DNA from: Cyanophora paradoxa CCMP329 | Taxonomy: Eukaryota; Plantae; Glaucophyta | DNA: 64,000 nucleotides | Assembly (NCBI GenBank): GCA_004431415.1 | Contig: QPMI01000062.1 | Coordinates: 310,001 to 374,000 of the forward strand | Reading direction: 5' to 3' | Shown: piece by piece, positions 48,048 to 59,924 of the stretch | Layout of the letters: every line of letters begins with the position of its first letter | Position numbering within the stretch: the first letter of the stretch is position 1 | Notes under the pieces: generated by a model | What the model was told of the DNA's origin: nothing | Databases searched by the model: none | What the model saw: the letters and a program-made list of their open reading frames with translations, nothing else | Program-made: the position numbers and the translations under genes

Positions 48048-48180
48048 CCGCACCAGATACATTCGTTCGCGTAACGTACAAATACAGAAAACGTGCATGG
48101 TAGGGGGAAACGCGGATACACGCTTGCGCATCATGGCATGGCAAGAGCGGCCCTGTGGGCGAAGCCCTCGCGATCGCCGT

Positions 48181-48630
48181 CGTCGCGCGCGGCACCCGAG
48201 GCCCGGCCCGGCTTCTTTGCCGGCGAGCCAGCGGGGTACGGCCACAGGGCGTGACGTCACCAGGTCGGCGTGCGCCACCGATCAGCCCCGCGCGGGGCTT
48301 CTAGCGGCTATGCTACATGTAGGAAATGGTGCCTTACGGCGGCGGCTGTTGATCCCACCGCTGCTCGGGGCCTGCTGGCCGTGAAACCGAGAAAGACGAG
48401 CGCCTCACGTGATTATTTTGAATTCACGTGAGAATTTGGACCCCGCCAGAGTCGAACCCAGGCAGGTGAACCCGCCACGCTACAGTCGGGTCTAGGTTGA
48501 ACCACGCGAGAAGTTAGTCGGGCGCTGGTTCGCCCCTGTACCATGCGCAGCCAGCGCAGGAGCGCAAATTTGCTCCCCTCAACGGAGCAACGACGCGTCG
48601 GCGCAGAAGCAGTGCAGCAGCGTAGCACCA
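48181..48630. repeat. 450-bp direct repeat, copy 1
   Basis: Identical to 49989-50438 except at 4 positions (offset 1808). Confidence 0.97.
48404..48432. promoter_or_regulatory. Twin TCACGTGA E-box/G-box palindrome (copy 1)
   Basis: CTCACGTGA-TTATTTTGAAT-TCACGTGAG; a GTGACGTCAC CRE-like palindrome also lies at 48251-48260. Confidence 0.55.
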
Positions 48631-49290: not shown

Positions 49291-49988
49291 GTCAAGAGTG
49301 GCTCACCGCCATCACAGCCCGTCTGCTTGAACCGGAGTCCGTCAGAAACCGAGAGCGTAGGCGGAGCTCGAGGCCGCAGCCGGAAGGCACCGGAGCGAGG
49401 GTTAGTGCATGCACGAGAGCCCGGAATCCGTTGTCAGAACCCAGACAGAGCGGAATGCTGCGCGGAAAAAAGGACCGCAGCACGTCCGCAGCACGTCCGA
49501 GAGCCGCGTTCTCTGGCCATGCCAGGGCACGCGAAGTCCCGGGCCGACGCCTCGGCTGCGACAAAGTTGAAAGCGAGCGCGAGGCGTGCGTACGCGTGTC
49601 CTCTCTCCTGCGAAGGGATGGCACGCCAGACACGTGCACTCCGCTAGCGCGACGCAAGAAAGCCAAAGCGCGTGCTGGATGCGAAAGTACCAGATCGAAT
49701 CACTCGAATTCGATAGCAGGGCGACATACGTGGCACTGACGTGCTCGTTGAACCCAGCCGACAAGCAGCTTTGCCTCCAGCTACGTGCAGGTCTGTCTGT
49801 CTGTGCTTTGCTTTCTGAAGGTGGTACAGCGTTTAGCTTGCTGAGGCGTACGCTAGCTGACGTGGACCCACGTACCGTGGCACACGCGGGGCTAGCGTTC
49901 TGGGGGAAGCACGCTTTCTTCGCGGGCCGGGGGCGCCGGTGCTGAATGCGGCTCCGAGCAGCGGCCGTGCGGTCGAGGCCCTCGCCGC

Positions 49989-50438
49989 CGTCGCGCGCGG
50001 CACCCGAGGCCCGGCCCGGCTTCTTTGCCAGCGAGCCGGCGGGGTACGGCCACAGGGCGTGACGTCACCAGGTCGGCGTGCGCCACCGATCAGCCCCGCG
50101 CGGGGCTTCTAGCGGCTATGCTACATGTAGGAAATGGTGCCTTACGGCGGCGGCTGTTGATCCCACCGCTGCTCGGGGCCTGCTGGCCGTGAAACCGAGA
50201 AAGACGAGCGCCTCACGTGATTATTTTGAATTCACGTGAGAATTTGGACCCCGCCAGAGTCGAACCCAGGCAGGTGAACCCGCCACGCTACAGTCGGGTC
50301 TAGGTTGAACCACGCGAGAAGTTAGTCGGGCGCTGGTTCGCCCCTGTACCACGCGCAGCCAGCGCAGGAGCGCAAATTTGCTCCCCTCAACGGAGCAACG
50401 ACGCGTCGGCGCAGAAGCAGCGCAGCAGCGTAGCACCA
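49989..50438. repeat. 450-bp direct repeat, copy 2
   Basis: Near-identical to 48181-48630; ends about 300 bp before the bHLH-LOV ATG. Confidence 0.97.
50212..50240. promoter_or_regulatory. Twin TCACGTGA E-box/G-box palindrome (copy 2)
   Basis: CACGTG at 50214-50219 and 50233-50238; GTGACGTCAC at 50059-50068. Confidence 0.6.
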
Positions 50439-50736
50439 TGCGGCGACGCAAGCGCGCGCGGTAGTGCTGGCATCCCACCGACCTAGGTGCGCATGGGCGA
50501 CGCGCACTTCCGGGACGTTTAGAGATGCTGGCCGGAGCTAGAGGGCGGCCGGCGGGATCCGCGGCGGCGCTGGGCCGCGCGGCGGCGGCGTGCGCCGGCG
50601 CCGGCCGCGGCCGCCGCGTCGCGCGTTCCACGCCGGCTCCCGGGCGCCGCCCGCCCCGCCGCCGCCCGCCCAGAAGGATGCGCATGCGCGAATAGAACCT
50701 GACGACCTCGCTTGCGCGGTGCCCCTCGCCGCAGAA

Positions 50737-53700
50737 ATGAGACATGAGACTCGAGGCGGGCTTGCGCAGCCTCAGCCGGGACAGATGCCCATGGAAAGGA
50801 TGGACATCGGCGGCGGGTGCGCAGAATACTATCGTAGAGACGAGGTGAACTATCTAGGCCAGCAGTGGCCGTCCCCCGTGATTGCCATGGCGGCCATGCA
50901 ATTGCAAATGGCCGCCTCCCAAGCTTCCTCGGGCGGATCAAATCTCCCTCGAGACCCCAGCAGGCGGACCTCCCTACGCAGCGCCCCCGGAACGTGCTCG
51001 GACCCTCGCTAACTCTCGCCTCTCGGTGCGCAGCGGCGATCTCGGCGTGCGGGACTGGAGCTCGCAGCGGAGCGACGCGGGAGGGGGCCGCCGCCCGAAC
51101 CCGAGCCCCCCGCCGGGCCAGACGAAGCGAAGGGCGGGCGAGCCCTCTGTACAGCAGGGCCCGGCGCCCAACGCCGGCCTCGCGTCCATATCCCACTACC
51201 CCTCCGCCTTCCACCAGCCGGCCCACCAGCCGGCCCACCCGCCCCCCCCGATGCACATGCCCCCCGCCTTCCTCCCCTCCCTCTCGAACCCCCCGCGCCC
51301 CAGCCCGCCGTCCTCGCGCGACGGCGACCTCCCCTCGGTGCAGAGCGTACCCATCCCCCACGGCCACGCCAGCGACGGCGCCCGCCCCGTGAGCATCCTG
51401 GTGTCCCACTACAGCAGCCCGCGGGAGGAGCCGTCGGCCTCGCCGGTGATGCCGTTTCGAGAGCAGCAGCAGCCGTCGCCGTCGCCCTCGCAGGGGCCGC
51501 CGCAGGAGCAGCGGGCGCTGCCGCCGAAGCCGAAGAAGCGGGGCCACTCGGAGATCGAGCGGAACCGGCGGGAGGCGATCAACGACCGCATCTCCGACCT
51601 CAAAGACGTCCTTGCCATACCCCCCGTGCGCCCCCCAGGCCCCTAGGGGCCCGTCACCCCCCTCCGTGGCCCCGGGCTGACGGGGCCGGCGCCGGCGGGC
51701 AGAACGCGCCGACGCTGATATCGAACAAGACGAGCATCCTGGGGACGGCGGTGGAGCAGCTCACGACCCTCGTTCTCGAGAACAAGGCCCGCCCTCCCCC
51801 CGCCTCCCCCCTCCGCCCCGCCACCCCGGCGCCGCTGACGGCCCGGGGGCGCGCGCGCAGTCGCTGAAGATGGAGCTGGACCAGCTGCAACGGGAGCTCT
51901 CCAAGCTGCGCGTGCGGGCGGAGAAGTCACAGCGCGCCGCCGCGCACGCCGGCGGCGGCAGCAGCGGCAGCGGGGGCAAGGACAACGGGAGCAGCTCAAG
52001 CAGCACGAGCGGGAACGGGCACGGCGGGGGCGGCAACGGGATCGCCTCGTCCAACGGCTCGTGGTCGAACGGCAACGGGGAGCGCGGGGAGGCGGGGCGG
52101 CGGGGCGAGGGGGGCGAGCGCGAGCAGCGCCCGGGCTCCCGCTCCGGCTCGGACGAGTGCGCCCCGCCCCGCCCGCCCCTCTGCGCCCCGCCGCCCCCGC
52201 CCCTCACGCGCGCCGCGCTCGCAGCTCGTCGGAGGACGCCGGGATGGGCTCCAACGGGGACAACAGCAACGGGGAGAACAGCACCGGCGAGGGCTCCAAC
52301 GGCAACGGCTCGCCGCCTCTCATGGGGGACTCTGAGGAGAGCCCGCCCCGCACGCACTCCAACGCGGCCAGCGCCGGCACCAGCCTCGGCTCGTCGTCAG
52401 AGGGCGCGGCCAAGCGGGCGGCCGGCCCCGGGCGCGAGCGGCGGGACGAGGCCGAGGGGGGCGGGAGCAGGCCCTCCTCGACGGGCAGCATGCGCGACGA
52501 CCCGCCGTGCGCCCTCCGAAGCCCCCCTCCGACGCGGCCGACGCTCGGCTGACTCTCTCGGCAGGGGCGAGGGGTCGCTGGCGCTGCCGGAGGGCCCGGC
52601 GCGGGTCTCCCCCTCGGCGATCTGGGCGGCCGACTGCGAGGTGGAGAGGATGGGGGCGATGGACAGCGTCGAGGACATGCTCACCGAGTACCCCGAGGGG
52701 CCGCAGGCCGCCGCCAGCAAGCGCCCCCTCACCCTCCAGGAGCTCATGCACGCCGGCAACGGCGCGGCGGCCAAGTCGCCGCTGGCGCAGGCGGGGGCGA
52801 CGCGGCCGACGCAGAGCTCGCCGCACGGCTCGAGCAGCTCCGGCTCCTCGGCCTCGGGCTCGGGCTCGCAGGGCAACGGCAACGGCTCCAGCGGCAGCGC
52901 CGGCCACGGCTCCCGCAACGGCCACGGGAGCACCTCGAGCGGCACCGGCAACGGCGCCAACGGCTCGAGCAGCCTCTCGGGGGCCTCATCCCGCACCCCG
53001 CCCGAGCTCCGCGTGCGCCCGGGCCCCTCCCCGCCCGCCCTCGGCCTGCCTGACCCCGCCGCCGGCCCCCACAGAGCCTGACGCTGGGCCCCGAGCGGGA
53101 GTTCCTGAAGCGGGGCGAGCTGGGCTCCATGTCCGGGATGATCGTCTCGACGACGGGCCCGAACGTCCCCTCCTCCAACTCGTCCGGGGACAACGACGAC
53201 TCCAAGTCCTCGGGCGGCTCCTCCTCCTCGGGCGCCCGCACGCCCCTCTCCTCCTCCTCCGGCAACGGCGGCAAGGGCAACGGCAACGGCTCCGGCAGCG
53301 CCGCCCGCGAGGGCGGCACCGCCCGCTCCAAGCAGCGCGAGCGCGCCCGCGCCGAGCGCGAGGGCAAGAAGCGGGCCGGCGAGGGCCCGGACGCGGAGCT
53401 GGCGGCGCCGTACACGGTCTCGTGCCGGGGCTTCAGCGAGGAGATGCTCGCGAGCACGGCGCGGCGCCTCGGCCGCACCGCCGCCGAGGTCGACGAGGGG
53501 GCCGGCCCGGGCCCCGCCGCCTCCCCCAGCGAGTCCGCCGAGGAGGCCCCCCGGGGGCGGGCCGAGGCGGCGGAGGCGATGCTCTCGGTGGACCTGCCGA
53601 TGGCCCACGTCTCGATGCGCCAGTTCTTCGCCATCAACCTCAAGATGGCCCTCGACGCCCTCCTCGTCGCCGACGAGGCCCCCGACGGCTCGGGGCCCCT

Positions 53701-55208
53701 CATCCTCTACGCCTCGGACGGCCTCCAGCGCCTCACCGGCTTCTCAGCCGGCGAGCTCCTCTGCCGGCCCCTCGCCGCCCTCCAGGGCGGGGCCCGCGGG
53801 GCCGTGCAGGGCGCGGAGCTCGCGGAGGCGGCGGCGCAGGCGCGCCTCGACGGCGTGCTGCGCCTCGCGGAGGTCGTCTGCGTGCGCAAGGACGGGCGGC
53901 CGTTCTGGGCGCTGGCGTGCCTGCAGCCGGTGAGGGACAGCGGGGAGCGGACGACGGGCCTCGTGCTCGCCCTCATGGACGTCACGGGCCTCAAGCGCCC
54001 GGGCTTCCGTCCCGACGACTCCTTCATCGCGTGCGCCCCGCCGCCGGCCCGCTCGCTGGGCCCCGCCTCACACCCTCGCCCCGCAGGTCGTACACCGGCC
54101 TGAGCGGCGGCGAGGACGGAAGCGGCGGCTCAGGCGGCTTCCCCCCCGCCTACCAGAGCGGCGCCTTCAACTTCTCGCGCTTCAAGGCCCGCCGCGCCCC
54201 TCCTCCGCCCCCGCCAGGCCCGAAACCCTCCTCTGACCTCCCCCGCAGAACCTCTCGGCGCAACAGCCGTCCTCGCCGGAGGGGGCGGGTGAGGCGGAGG
54301 CGGAGGGCGGGGGCGCCGGCGGGGCGCACCACGGGCGGCTGCTGCAGGCGCTGGCGTCGCTGCTGGCGATGGCGCTCTCGACGCTGCTGGTGACCAACGG
54401 GGCCGACGACGACTACCGCATCGCCTTCACCACCCCTGGCTACCAGATGGCGCGCCCCTTCGAGCCCCGCGCCCCCGCACACACTCCGGGCCCGGCTGAC
54501 GGCGGCGGCGGCGCGCAGATGACGGGCTACTCGAAGCGGGAGCTGCTCGGCAAGAACTGCCGCATGCTGCAGGGGCGCGACACGGACCGCGCCGCCTGCC
54601 GCCTCCTCAAGCGGCACCTCGCGTCGGTGCGCGCGGCGGGCCGGGCCGTGCCGGGGGCGCGTGCGTGCGTGCCGACGCGGGCGGCAGGGCGAGCGGAGCG
54701 TGCTGGCCGAGCTGGTCAACTACCGCAAGGACGGCGGCGCCTTCGTCAACCTGATGCACATCGTCCCCATCCCGTCCCCCTCTGGACAGGCCAGCCCCCC
54801 CGCCCTCCCCCGCCCCGCGCCCCGCGCCGCCCCGTGCGAGGCCGCGCGAAGGTCACTCGATACGTGTCGGTCCACACGGATGTCACCGCGTTCGCTGCGC
54901 CCCGCCCGGGGCCCCCCGCCCCGACGCCCCCCGGTGCCTGGCCCGGTGAGCGCTTCCCCTCGCCGTCCCGCAGAGCCTCCCTAGCGCGGGGCGGCGACCC
55001 TCACGAGTCGCCCCGCGCGCAGCCCCAGCCCCAGCCCCAGCCCCCGTACAACCCCCAGCCCCAGTACCCGTCCCCGCCTCCGCCCCGGGGGCAAGCCCCG
55101 GCGCCAGCCCCCCCGAGGGCGGCGGAGCGTGAGATGAACGCCGGCCGCGGCGAGCGCGACGCTTTCGGTTGCGACCTCGCCACGCGAATGGACGTTTCTC
55201 CAGCCTAA
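50737..55208 (+). CDS. bHLH-leucine zipper transcription factor with a degenerate PAS/LOV and an intact LOV domain (putative blue-light receptor), 12 exons
   Basis: KKRGHSEIERNRREAINDRISDLKDVL...NKTSILGTAVEQL; zipper LVLENKSLKMELDQLQRELSKL; PAS ILYASDGLQRLTGFSAGELLCRPLAALQG...RKDGRPFW; LOV MTGYSKRELLGKNCRMLQGRDTD...VNYRKDGGAFVNL. Confidence 0.9.
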
Positions 55209-55729
55209 GTGTAAGATATCCGTGTAGCGGGGCGCGCGGGCATGCAGTCAGGCTGCCCCGGCCCCCGTTTGAGGCGTTCCACTGCTGCGCTCCAAGGCCC
55301 ACTGTGCCCCCTCCAAGCTCCAGACTAGCTATTTATTTGAATTGCAGGATAGCGAGCGCGTAGGACAGGCACAGATTATTTGTAGCGTTAGGTCGGGCCC
55401 GTTGCCAGAGTTGAAAAGACCTTGCGAGATCGATATTCGAAAGTACCTAGAGCAACTTGGCAAGTCAGAGATGTAACCTTTTCTTTTGAAACTGCAGCTG
55501 AATCCAGGATCCGGACATCCCTTCAAGAGCCCCTTTCTTTGAAGTCCCGACGTCTTGAGCTTCAATTGCCGCTATTATTATCAATTTCTTCTCGATTTGC
55601 ATTATTCCCTTTTTTGCTGTTAGTTTAACTAGGAGCGTGCCTTGCTCGGTGAGATGTGAGCGTCTATCGAAAACAGGCTGCCTACCGTAGCACAGCACGC
55701 ACGACTGTGCATGTGGGAGCGAGGGGGAC

Positions 55730-58700
55730 TCACTGCGCGGCGGCCACGGAGCGGCGGGCGGAGGAGGGCCGGGGCGGGGCGGGGGCGCCCCGCGGCGTGG
55801 AGGCCTCGGGGGCGAGGGGCCGGAGGACGGCCACGCGCTCGGGGGCGGCCAGCGCGACGGGCAGCAGGAGCCGCAGCGCCGCCGCGCCGGCCGCCTTGAC
55901 GCGCACACCGGCGGCGGCCTTCGCCTCGGCGGCGGCGGCGGGGCTGGGGAGGAGGAGGAAGGCCTGGTCGCCCTGCGGGTCGAGCAGGCAGGGGGCGCCG
56001 GGGGGCAGGCCCCGCAGGCCGCGCAGGGCCTCCCGCAGGCCCCCGCCTCCCGCGCCCCGTTCAGCGGCACCGCCTGCCCCCGCCGCGCCCGTCGGCCGCC
56101 CGCTCGCTCGCGCCGGCCTTGGGCGGGGCGGGCGGGCGGGGCGGGGCGCACCACGAGGGCCTCCCGCTCCTCCTTCGTCAGCTCCGCGTACGACGCCGGC
56201 GCCCCCCGCGGCCTGCCCCGGGCCCGTGAGCCGCGGGCGGCGGACTGGGGACTGGGGCGGAGAGGGCGGCGCACGAGACGAGGGCGGCGGCGGCGGAGCC
56301 GGGGGCGAGGGCGGGGCGGGGAGCTCGCGGAAGAGGCCGACGCGGGCGCGGCGGGCGGGGGCGGGGGCCTCGCCGGGGTACGCGAAGGAGGGGCGGGGGC
56401 GGGAGGCCGGTGGCGGGTCGAGGGGACCTCGAGGGAGAGGGGCACCTCGCCCCGCGCCACGCGCCGCAGCAGCGCGCAGCAGCACGCCCCGCTCCGCCCC
56501 GCCCCGCACCGGCACCGCCCCGCCGACGCGCACCCCGGCGCGCCCCCGCCCGCCCCCTTCTCCGCCTCCTCCCCCTCCGCGGGGGCCCGCGGGGAGGCCT
56601 TCAGGGGCCCCTCCTCGCGGCCGGCGGGCGCCGCGGGGGCGGCGTGCTGCTGGAGGGCGCGGAGGGGCAGGCGGGGCACGCAGGCGGGGCGGGGCGGGGC
56701 GGGCAGGGCGGCCCGCAGCCGCTCCCCCTCGCCCTCCTCGGCCGCCGCGATGAGCTCCTCCCGCAGCTGCCGCGAGAGCGACGCCGCCGAGGCCCGCCCG
56801 GGGCCCTGCGCCGCCTGCCTCGCCCCCGCCGCACCGGCCGCGGGGCGCTCCTCGGGGGTCGCGGGAAGGGGCACGTCCGGCGCGAAGTGCACGCGCTGCC
56901 GCCCCGGGCCCCGTGAGGCGGCGCGGGGCGGAGTGTGGGGCGGGCTCATGAGGGCAGGCGGACCTTCGGCTCGTGGGCGGGCGCGGCGGCCTGCGCGGGC
57001 GCGCCGGCCTCCGCGGCGGCCTCGGCGGGGCCCGGGTCGGAGATGGCCGCTGCTGCGGCGGCGGCGGCGGCGCGCAGGCGCTCCGCCTCGGTCTCGCTCT
57101 CCGCGAGCCGCGCCCGCAGCGCCTCCGCCTCCCGGCCCCGCCCCGCCGCCTCCTCCCGCGCCGCCGCCAGCGCCGCCTCCTGCGCCGCCCCGTCAGGCGG
57201 GGCCGGCGGGGCGGGCTGCGCCCGGGGGCCGCACCGCGGCGGCGGCGCGCGCCTGGGCCTCCTGGGCGGCCGCCTCGCGCGCGCACTGCGGGGCCGGCGT
57301 GAGGAGCGGGGCGCCCCGGAGCGGTGGGGAGGGGGGGGCCCACCAGGTCCTGGAGGAGGGCCTCGAGCCGCTCGGCGCGCGCCCGCTCCTGCTCGAGCTC
57401 CCCGCGGGCCGCCGCGAGGGCCGCCTCGGCGCGGGCCCCGGCGGGCTTCGCCCCGCCAGCTCGTCCCGCGCCGCGGCCGCCTCGCGCCGGGCGAGCGAGG
57501 CGCGCGCGCAGGCCGCCGCCAGCTCCCCCGCGCCGCCTCCATCTGCTCCTCCACCGCCGCCGCCGCCCCCCGCGCCCACTCCACGTCCGCCCGCAGCGCC
57601 CCCGCCTCCCGCTCTGCCACCTCCGCCCGCGCCCGCGCCGCCTCCGCAGCCGCGGCTGCCTCGGCGCCCGCCCCGCGGGCCGCCTCGAGCTCCGCCCGCA
57701 GCGATTCCGCCTCCTGAGCCGCCGCCTCCGCGGCCGCTGCAGCCTCGGCGCCCGCCCCGCGAGCCGCCTCGAGCTCCGCCCGCAGCGATTCCGCCTCCTG
57801 AGCAGCCGCCTCCGCGGCCGCTGCAGCCTCGGCGCCCGCCCCGCGAGCCGCCTCGAGCTCCGCCCGCAGCGATTCCGCCTCCTGAGCCGCCGCCTCCGCG
57901 GCCGCTGCGGCCTCGGCGCCCGCCCCGCGAGCCGCCTCGAGCTCCGCCCGCAGCGATTCCGCCTCCTGAGCCGCCGCCTCCGCGGCCGCTGCAGCCTCGG
58001 CGCCCGCCCCGCGAGCCGCCTCGAGCTCCGCCCGCAGCGATTCCGCCTCCTGAGCAGCCGCCTCCGCGGCCGCTGCGGACTCGGCGCCCGCCCCGCGGGC
58101 CGCCTCGAGCTCCGCCCGCAGCGATTCCGCCTCCTGAGCAGCCGCCTCCGCGGCCGCTGCGGACTCGGCGCCCGCCCCGCGGGCCGCCTCGAGCTCCGCC
58201 CGCAGCGATGCCGCCTCCTGAGCCGCCGCCTCCGAGCGCGCATTTGTCTCTGCGGACCTCGCGAGCGCGCGCGCGGCCTCCGCGCGGGCAGCCTCGAGCT
58301 CCGACGCGAGGGAAGCGGCAGAGGCGTCGCCGGCGTGGACGGCCGCCAGCGCGGCCGCCACCGCCTCCTCCGCCCTCGCGCAGGCCCCCGGGCAGCCGCC
58401 GCCTCCGAGTCCCGCTCCCCGCGCAGCCCGTCGAGCGCAGCGCGCGCCGCATCCGCCTCCCTCTCCGCCGCCGCCGCCCGCGCCTCAGCCGCCGCCGCGC
58501 GCGCCGCCGCCGCCTCGGCCGAGGCCCGCGCCTCGTCGCGCGCCGCCTCGAGCTCAGCGCGCACGGCCGCCGCCGCCCGCTCGGCCTCGGCCGCGCGCCC
58601 GCCGGCGGCCTGCAGGCGGCCCTCGGCGGCCTGGGCGCGGGCGAGGGCGAGGCGGGCTCCGGCGGCCACGGCGTCGGCGCGGCCCTCGGCGGCGCCGGCA

Positions 58701-59924
58701 GCGCCCCGCGCGAGCATCGCCCCCGCCGCGGCGGCGTCGGCGCGCCCCGCGGCGGCGGCCAGCGCCTCGCGCAGCGCCTCCGCCTGCGCGCGCGCCTCCG
58801 CGAGCGCGAGCTCGGCCGCCCGCGCGCGCTCCCCCGCCCCCATCGCCTCCTGCCGCGCGCCGCCCAGCTCCTGCGCCCCGGAGGCCCCTCGGCGGGCGCC
58901 CCGGTGGCAGGGCCGGCGTGGCGGTGCGGGGCTGACCTGCTCGCGGGCCGCGAGCTCCTCGCGCAGCTGCCGCACATCGCACATCGCCGCCTCCTGCGCC
59001 AGCGCGCGCGGTGTCAGCGGGAGACGCTGGGCCGCTCTGGGGGCGAGACGCGCCAGGAGGGCCCCGAGCAGAAGTTGACGAGCTGCGCGGCCTGCGCGCG
59101 CCGGGGCGGTCGGTCGGCCGCTGGCGCGGGCGGCGCGAGGGCGAGCGCGGGGCCGCGCCTCGGCGGACTTGGCGCAGGCGGCCTCCGCCCGGCGCTGCGA
59201 CTCGAGCTGCGGAGGCGCCGTTGGGCGGGGCGCGCGAGAGAGCGCGCGAGGCGCCAGCGCGCACGAGCTCGTCGATCTCCGCCGATAGACACGCCTCGAC
59301 GGCGATGCCCTCCGCGGCAGCCCGCGCCTCGCCGTCCCGCGCCTGCTCCAGCCGCCGCTCCGCATCCGCCAGCCTCCGGCTCTGCGCCCGCCGCGTGAGG
59401 CCTCGACGATTACGTGTCAGAGGGAAGAGTGCGGCACCAGCTCTGCATTCCGCACGGCGAGCGGGGCGTCTAGTTCCACCTGCATGCCCCCTCGTGAGCT
59501 GAGCGGGGGAGCGAGCGGGACCCAACGAAGAGCTCACCTGTCGCGCCTCCGAGGCTCGGCGGGCCGGGGGCGGGACCATGCTCGCGCCGACCACGATGCC
59601 GCTCAGAGCAGGACCGCAGCGCCGCATCCGCTCGTACGCTAGAGTGGACTTCAGACGGTCGTTCTCGGCCCTCAGCGTCTCGGCCTGTTCACAACAAGGG
59701 TCGCATGCAGCAGACTTTCACCACAGCAAGAGCAGAGGCACCTGGACCAGCGCTTCGCGGTGCGCTGCTTGGTACGAAAGGAGGAGCTCCTGAGTTGCGC
59801 GGTGTGCATCCACCTCGGCCAGGCGACGCATACGCTCACGCTCCGCCTCTTCCGCAGCCAGCCGGTTGCGCAGTGACGCGATTTCGTTCATGAGCTCGCG
59901 TGAGTCTCTACTAGCTTCAGCCAT
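55730..59924 (-). CDS. Long Ala/Glu-rich coiled-coil protein
   Basis: MAEASRDSRELMNEIASLRNRL...; spliced heptad exons; apparent frameshifts. Confidence 0.65.
57640..58232 (-). repeat. Coding tandem repeat, about 7 x 84 bp (28 aa)
   Basis: GCGATTCCGCCTCCTGAG recurs every 84 nt (57701, 57785 ... 58121, with a one-base variant at 58205); unit AESLRAELEAARGAGAE(A/S)AAAAEAAAQE. Confidence 0.95.

Follow-up and report, generated by a model that had tools for sequence, protein, structure and literature searches.

Does the glaucophyte Cyanophora paradoxa encode a single protein that joins a helix-loop-helix DNA-binding domain to LOV-type flavin domains, and, if so, is that protein a blue-light receptor? 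The question is raised by positions 50737-55208 of a 64,000-nucleotide stretch of strain CCMP329 (contig QPMI01000062.1, 310,001 to 374,000; hereafter the window), in which an initial annotation joined 12 exons by hand into a basic helix-loop-helix leucine zipper (bHLH-ZIP) transcription factor with a C-terminal LOV domain and proposed a new class of light receptor. The gene is real and expressed, and it joins a DNA-binding domain to two LOV-type domains. Its gene structure, spliced transcript, domains, residue states and membership in a glaucophyte family of bHLH-ZIP-LOV-LOV proteins are established; the family is the object of interest, and the gene at this locus is its atypical member, a long-branch outlier.

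The coding model, built by reading the sequence and mapping splice signals, consists of 12 exons on the plus strand (50737-50963, 51034-51625, 51703-51786, 51861-52156, 52225-52506, 52565-53012, 53075-54030, 54087-54186, 54249-54449, 54519-54626, 54688-54789 and 54852-55208) and comprises 3753 nt encoding 1250 amino acids, with no internal stops and a GC content at third codon positions (GC3) of 0.94. It was compared with RNA-type Logan contigs from four runs in three studies; these are assembled contigs rather than raw reads and their type is an automated guess, the RNA label being convincing because the introns are absent from them. All 11 coding introns (56-77 nt) are present as joints, 10 of them in all four runs and the remaining one in three. 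A single 3931-nt contig spans 51033-55689 and holds the bHLH exons, both LOV regions and the 3' untranslated region (UTR; 55209-55689, covered by RNA contigs) together, the outcome of a transcript check that the initial annotation had named beforehand; it rejects both two separate genes and a mis-splice. Of the coding introns between 50964 and 54851, five begin at a GC donor, and the last ends at an AAG acceptor without a clear CTGAC branch point; these features were considered as artefacts of the model and rejected as such, since every one of them appears as a joint in the RNA contigs. Over the coding region the contigs list no letter that differs from the genome. Residues 58-1250 are identical to EukProt EP00741_P021751, which is C. 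paradoxa tig00000241_g20994.t1 (g20994 hereafter), a database model that begins at Met58 (50908) rather than at 50737.

The order of domains read by eye, from bHLH through a four-leucine zipper and a Ser/Gly-rich linker to a C-terminal LOV, also holds. The bHLH (51533-51777, plus strand, residues 243-298, exons 2-3; Pfam HLH in exon 2, E 4e-7) has His5, Glu9 and Arg13 in its basic region, the combination that marks binders of CACGTG, the G-box. Helix 2 and the leucine zipper that follows it (51748-51917, plus strand, exons 3-4) provide four leucines at heptad spacing, and the protein thereby combines the His5-Glu9-Arg13 triad with the zipper of group B bHLH-ZIP factors. The closest PDB sequence matches are MITF, SREBP1, MYC2, Max and Cbf1 (E 2e-5 to 3e-2), in keeping with the USF/MiT-TFE-like character first ascribed to the domain; the resemblance to these factors is weak and does not establish orthology to any one subfamily. 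Between zipper and LOV1 lies a linker of ~490 amino acids with low hydrophobicity (51920-53590, plus strand), compared with 36-94 amino acids in the three subfamilies described below.

In a HMMER search with the exon-7 domain, g20994 itself was returned (as P0001), and eight of the 11 next matches were bHLH-ZIP-LOV-LOV proteins or fragments of them, as were the HLH-bearing matches to a Glaucocystis member. The family is found in Cyanophora, Glaucocystis, Gloeochaete and Cyanoptyche, with HLH, LOV1 and LOV2 domains in collinear order, common signatures in the A'α helices and, in all full-length members, His5, Glu9 and Arg13. That g20994 belongs to it is evident from a single transcript in which two LOV-derived domains follow a bHLH-ZIP, from the A'α signatures and from the placement, on long branches, of both LOV domains with those of the family. 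In the LOV-domain tree, in which long branches meet and leave the exact sister group unsure, the LOVs of the family separate from those of phototropins and histidine kinases (99/96), and the first domain of g20994 falls among family A/B LOV1 domains (96/94) and the second with LOV2 (85/81). Among the 312 proteins retrieved by these searches, which were not exhaustive, no non-glaucophyte protein carried a bHLH; the search with a canonical member was dominated by phototropins, and distant non-glaucophyte members may be missed. When metagenomes were scanned with an alignment of the family from bHLH to LOV1, 80 generic bHLH loci were recovered, and no LOV or PAS match lay in the sequence covered around them; many of the contigs are short, which leaves room for the family outside glaucophytes.

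A concatenated tree resolves three subfamilies, A (69/47, one group in 98% of bootstraps), B (99/98) and C (100/100), each present in several genera. Both LOVs are fully canonical in subfamily A, where compact members run from bHLH to LOV2 in ~450 amino acids; in B this is true of LOV1, LOV2 having lost its Cys and ligands; in C, both Cys and Gln remain in LOV1 but are replaced in LOV2, Cys by Gly or Ala and Gln by Glu. The C members P0012, P0154 and P0156 have Asn or Ser in place of the motif Arg in LOV1, and their LOV2 keeps both Asn, a state conserved across three genera; on its residues this LOV2 is a candidate LOV of the semiquinone or redox kind. The C. paradoxa paralogues number at least five, with g6598 in A, g2630 in B, g7305 in C, and g24129 and g20994 on long branches. 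The end branch of g20994 is 2.5, against a median of 0.11, and it lies nearest to subfamily A. In tig00000319_g24129 (P0011) both LOVs are degenerate and LOV2 retains only a Cys, so that this paralogue is likely a fully blind member. Family sequences are deposited in GenBank as 'putative LOV domain-containing protein' (AML78262-AML78367, AML77542/77546, AML79532), with the architecture of g20994 and the bHLH unannotated; those labelled C. paradoxa (P0002/P0151, P0155) clearly differ from g6598 and g2630 of the genome, and their source may be a different strain or Cyanophora species. LOV-pair searches, limited by word and length and missing known family members, found no close orthologue of g20994, and in the sequence library, clustered at 50%, close orthologues may hide behind P0001.

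Which of the two LOV domains of g20994 could still sense light? Both PAS folds have LOVs as their best structure matches. The first (53597-53989, plus strand, with its A'α helix; PAS_9 in exon 7, 6e-12) had been called a LOV-like PAS domain, and its fold is indeed of LOV type; because it groups with the A/B LOV1 domains in the tree, we take it to be a degenerate LOV1 of the family. In AsLOV2 numbering, assigned through the phototropin LOV2 row of the alignment, it shows N449P, C450L, R451A, N482C, N492A and Q513L, keeping one of six Cys-motif and flavin-ligand residues, and flavin binding is not expected of it. The second domain (54333-54890, plus strand, exons 9-12, with its A'α helix) has the LOV fold, the NCRxLQ motif and the two pteridine-binding Asn, and keeps T418, N449, C450, R451, L453, Q454, N482 and N492. 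The adduct-forming Cys1076 has the codon initially read (TGC, 54558-54560), and the two Asn codons are at 54718-54720 and 54748-54750. It departs from the canonical domain in Q513H, G511S, F494M, V416L, W491V and R467K, the first of which is His1140 (CAC, 54873-54875) on strand Iβ; alignment to solved LOVs places this residue exactly at the conserved signalling Gln, the neighbour of flavin N5, and among 275 motif-bearing LOVs compared a His at this site is unique to g20994 LOV2. A sequencing error at this codon is unsupported, as the RNA contigs have no other letter and the database model is identical. An AlphaFold model of g20994 contains two well-formed LOV folds (predicted template modelling score, pTM, 0.74 over 335 amino acids), and that of a canonical member reaches 0.56 over 445 amino acids, values that suggest, indirectly, that LOV1 and LOV2 may pack as one unit; a fold search found no solved tandem-LOV arrangement (TMq, the template-modelling score on the query, <=0.32).

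The consequences of His1140 can be gauged from engineered LOVs. The signalling Gln is mostly dispensable, though His breaks this rule: flavin is bound and no adduct forms in YF1 Q123H and AsLOV2 Q513H, and NmPAL Q347H loses its light response and is locked in a lit-like state (Dietler et al., PMC9098866). The His variant of CagFbFP folds and binds flavin mononucleotide (FMN). Because three receptors, YF1, NmPAL and AsLOV2, lost their photocycle or their response to light with this exchange (PMC9098866), the claim of a blue-light receptor, drawn from the retained Cys and Asn residues with no mention of His1140, is weakened for g20994; it fits g6598 and its orthologues better.

We see about an even chance that g20994, a member of a photoreceptor family, binds flavin yet is largely blind to light, serving as a G-box factor or as a dimer partner. 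It would encode a nuclear, G-box-binding bHLH-ZIP transcription factor in which LOV1 is an empty structural domain and LOV2 binds flavin, with little or no adduct formed next to His, while the disordered ~490-residue linker uncouples the LOV pair from the zipper. Because the His would limit the adduct and the linker would uncouple the LOV pair, the factor would be largely light-independent, acting on G-boxes by itself or tuning photoactive paralogues as a zipper or LOV dimer partner, and it might feed back on its own TCACGTGA boxes. The canonical members of subfamily A, such as g6598, are by their residues very probably photoactive; each of their two LOVs would hold FMN, and blue light would drive formation of the Cys-flavin adduct. 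By analogy with aureochromes, the adduct would rearrange the A'α-packed LOV pair and thereby alter how the nearby bHLH-ZIP dimerises or binds DNA. A wider proposal, which we hold only tentatively and consider somewhat doubtful, is that the family constitutes a class of its own among blue-light receptor transcription factors, with three ancient subfamilies and blind paralogues in a light-tuned network of G-box dimers, where g20994 would close a TCACGTGA feedback loop through a Cys-plus-His LOV2 with non-canonical flavin chemistry. In such a network, just as tentatively, the subfamilies would offer two live LOVs, one live LOV or altered LOVs.

Several points weigh against a light-blind g20994. 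The polar residues that contact flavin or form the adduct are kept six of six in LOV2, Cys included, against one of six in LOV1 (Fisher p 0.008, a post hoc comparison between domains of equal overall divergence), which suggests that flavin chemistry, and perhaps the Cys too, has been under selection, and G511S, F494M and V416L could make room for the His. Rare natural LOVs with His at this site exist (PMC9098866). The orthologue searches, limited as they were, yielded no sequence in which His1140 might be seen to be conserved.

These points lead to the strongest rival, that g20994 is itself a working blue-light receptor in which the pocket changes near His1140 restore the adduct and light acts through LOV-LOV dimerisation instead of zipper contact. 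Such a protein would account for the retention of Cys, Arg, Gln454 and both Asn despite the very long branch, and the LOV2 model matches LOVs of phototropin, Brucella and Chloroflexus at 1.2-1.6 Å (Z ~17.5), photoactive LOVs among them; Ser511 recurs in Brucella LOV-HK, the Gln is generally dispensable, and natural LOVs with the His are known (PMC9098866). The natural receptor assayed by Dietler et al. carried Met, not His, at the site, and His is among the few substitutions that abolish the response, as it did in three of three receptors assayed (PMC9098866); with the very long linker also against it, we consider this reading unlikely, at perhaps one chance in a few. Less probable again is a LOV2 repurposed as a flavin sensor that forms no adduct, responding to redox, photoreduction or, via the His, pH, so that the factor would report metabolic state and not light directly. 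Here the kept flavin ligands would find a use, Cys-less LOVs can signal through the neutral semiquinone, and His variants show pH-dependent spectra and alternative His conformations; the unused Cys is poorly explained. That g20994 is a recent duplicate under relaxed constraint, with a decaying LOV region and the bHLH-ZIP alone mattering if anything does, agrees with the very long branch, the dead LOV1, the expanded low-complexity linker and the missing orthologue in other glaucophytes (in weak searches), and is the least probable reading in view of a 1250-residue frame intact over 12 exons, accurate splicing in three studies, GC3 of 0.94, two folds predicted with high confidence and a selectively kept LOV2 pocket.

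The light-blind G-box factor favoured here would find sites next to its own gene. Twin TCACGTGA G-boxes lie at 50213-50239, ~70-100 bp upstream of the 5'-most transcript end, and a second pair at 48405-48431, within a duplicated copy offset by 1808 bp (48174-48473 and 49982-50281, 99% identical). The four TCACGTGA sites of the window compare with 0.18 expected, a count that the duplication reduces to two independent sites; CACGTG occurs 23 times in the window against 10.5 expected, an approximately twofold enrichment. Autoregulation of g20994 through these boxes is a guess. A TGACGTCA palindrome lies near 50060 in the same upstream region. On the plus strand, RNA contigs define a non-coding first exon (50311-50486) and a 5' UTR intron of 248 nt (50487-50734). 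The first exon contains an upstream open reading frame of eight codons (50438-50464, ATG at 50438), basic, stop-terminated and in the frame of the main one, for which translational control is possible. In one run an alternative GT donor at 50817 (intron 50817-51033) removes 49 codons in frame, including Met58. The convergent neighbour on the minus strand (55730-59365) encodes many tandem Ala/Glu-rich coiled-coil repeats.

How new is this design? The 2025 and 2026 reviews of algal photoreceptors name only phytochromes for glaucophytes in their text and do not mention HLH, and an ocean LOV survey describes homeobox, HSF, bZIP and WRKY fusions. One preprint refers in passing to 'HTH and HLH' LOV effectors, citing a 2014 paper. 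Searches of the literature for bHLH-LOV-type proteins, or for glaucophyte LOV with helix-loop-helix, found no relevant paper, and none that characterises or names the family. The 2014 paper is said to be the EL222 study. The GenBank entries presumably stem from the 2016 LOV survey of Glantz et al., which reportedly catalogued more than 100 sensor-effector arrangements, and the bHLH-ZIP-LOV-LOV architecture may already be listed there. The novelty first claimed for the locus therefore survives as the absence of a characterised example, and not as a one-off design: g20994 is a divergent paralogue in a glaucophyte-wide family whose sequences were already deposited. It is subfamily A that, on its residues, is the real candidate for a blue-light receptor transcription factor of a new kind. 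Glaucophytes make up one of the three lineages with primary plastids, and a multi-copy, lineage-wide family of LOV transcription factors offers a testable blue-light input to gene expression, possibly to a clock. In this family LOV has been joined to a DNA-binding domain independently, beside the fusions with bZIP, GATA, helix-turn-helix (HTH), homeobox, HSF and WRKY. Single-chain optogenetic G-box switches might be made from the compact canonical members, and g20994 puts to a natural test the rule that LOV photochemistry is lost when His replaces the signalling Gln.

Among known systems, the family resembles the aureochromes of stramenopiles, with a dimerising basic-region domain first, LOV last and an A'α helix before LOV; the nearest ESM Atlas feature match of a canonical member is a bZIP-LOV cluster (0.93). 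Aureochromes combine bZIP with a single C-terminal LOV, whereas g20994, a glaucophyte protein, has a Pfam HLH, no bZIP and two PAS_9 stretches, together with the long linker and the lost Gln. Phototropins share the tandem LOVs, canonical in motif in subfamily A, but end in a Ser/Thr kinase that is absent from g20994 and the family, and the family LOVs are on a separate branch in the limited tree. MITF/TFE, SREBP, USF, Max and Cbf1 share His5-Glu9-Arg13 and the zipper and are without sensor domains. Animal bHLH-PAS proteins (CLOCK/BMAL1, ARNT) and diatom RITMO1 likewise place PAS folds, tandem in animals, after an E-box-type bHLH; their PAS domains are non-LOV and follow the bHLH directly, with no zipper, whereas g20994 has a zipper and PAS folds of LOV type. 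A Galdieria bHLH with two PAS domains is noted in the RITMO1 paper, where LOV is not mentioned (PMC6600994). White Collar-1/White Collar-2 and VIVID of fungi and EL222 of bacteria are LOV-containing transcription factors too, and White Collar and EL222 differ in their GATA or HTH effectors and in a LOV N-terminal to the effector. In White Collar a photoactive factor is paired with a non-photoactive partner. The proposed network of G-box dimers would have parallels in aureochromes, in White Collar and in the CLOCK/BMAL1 layout.

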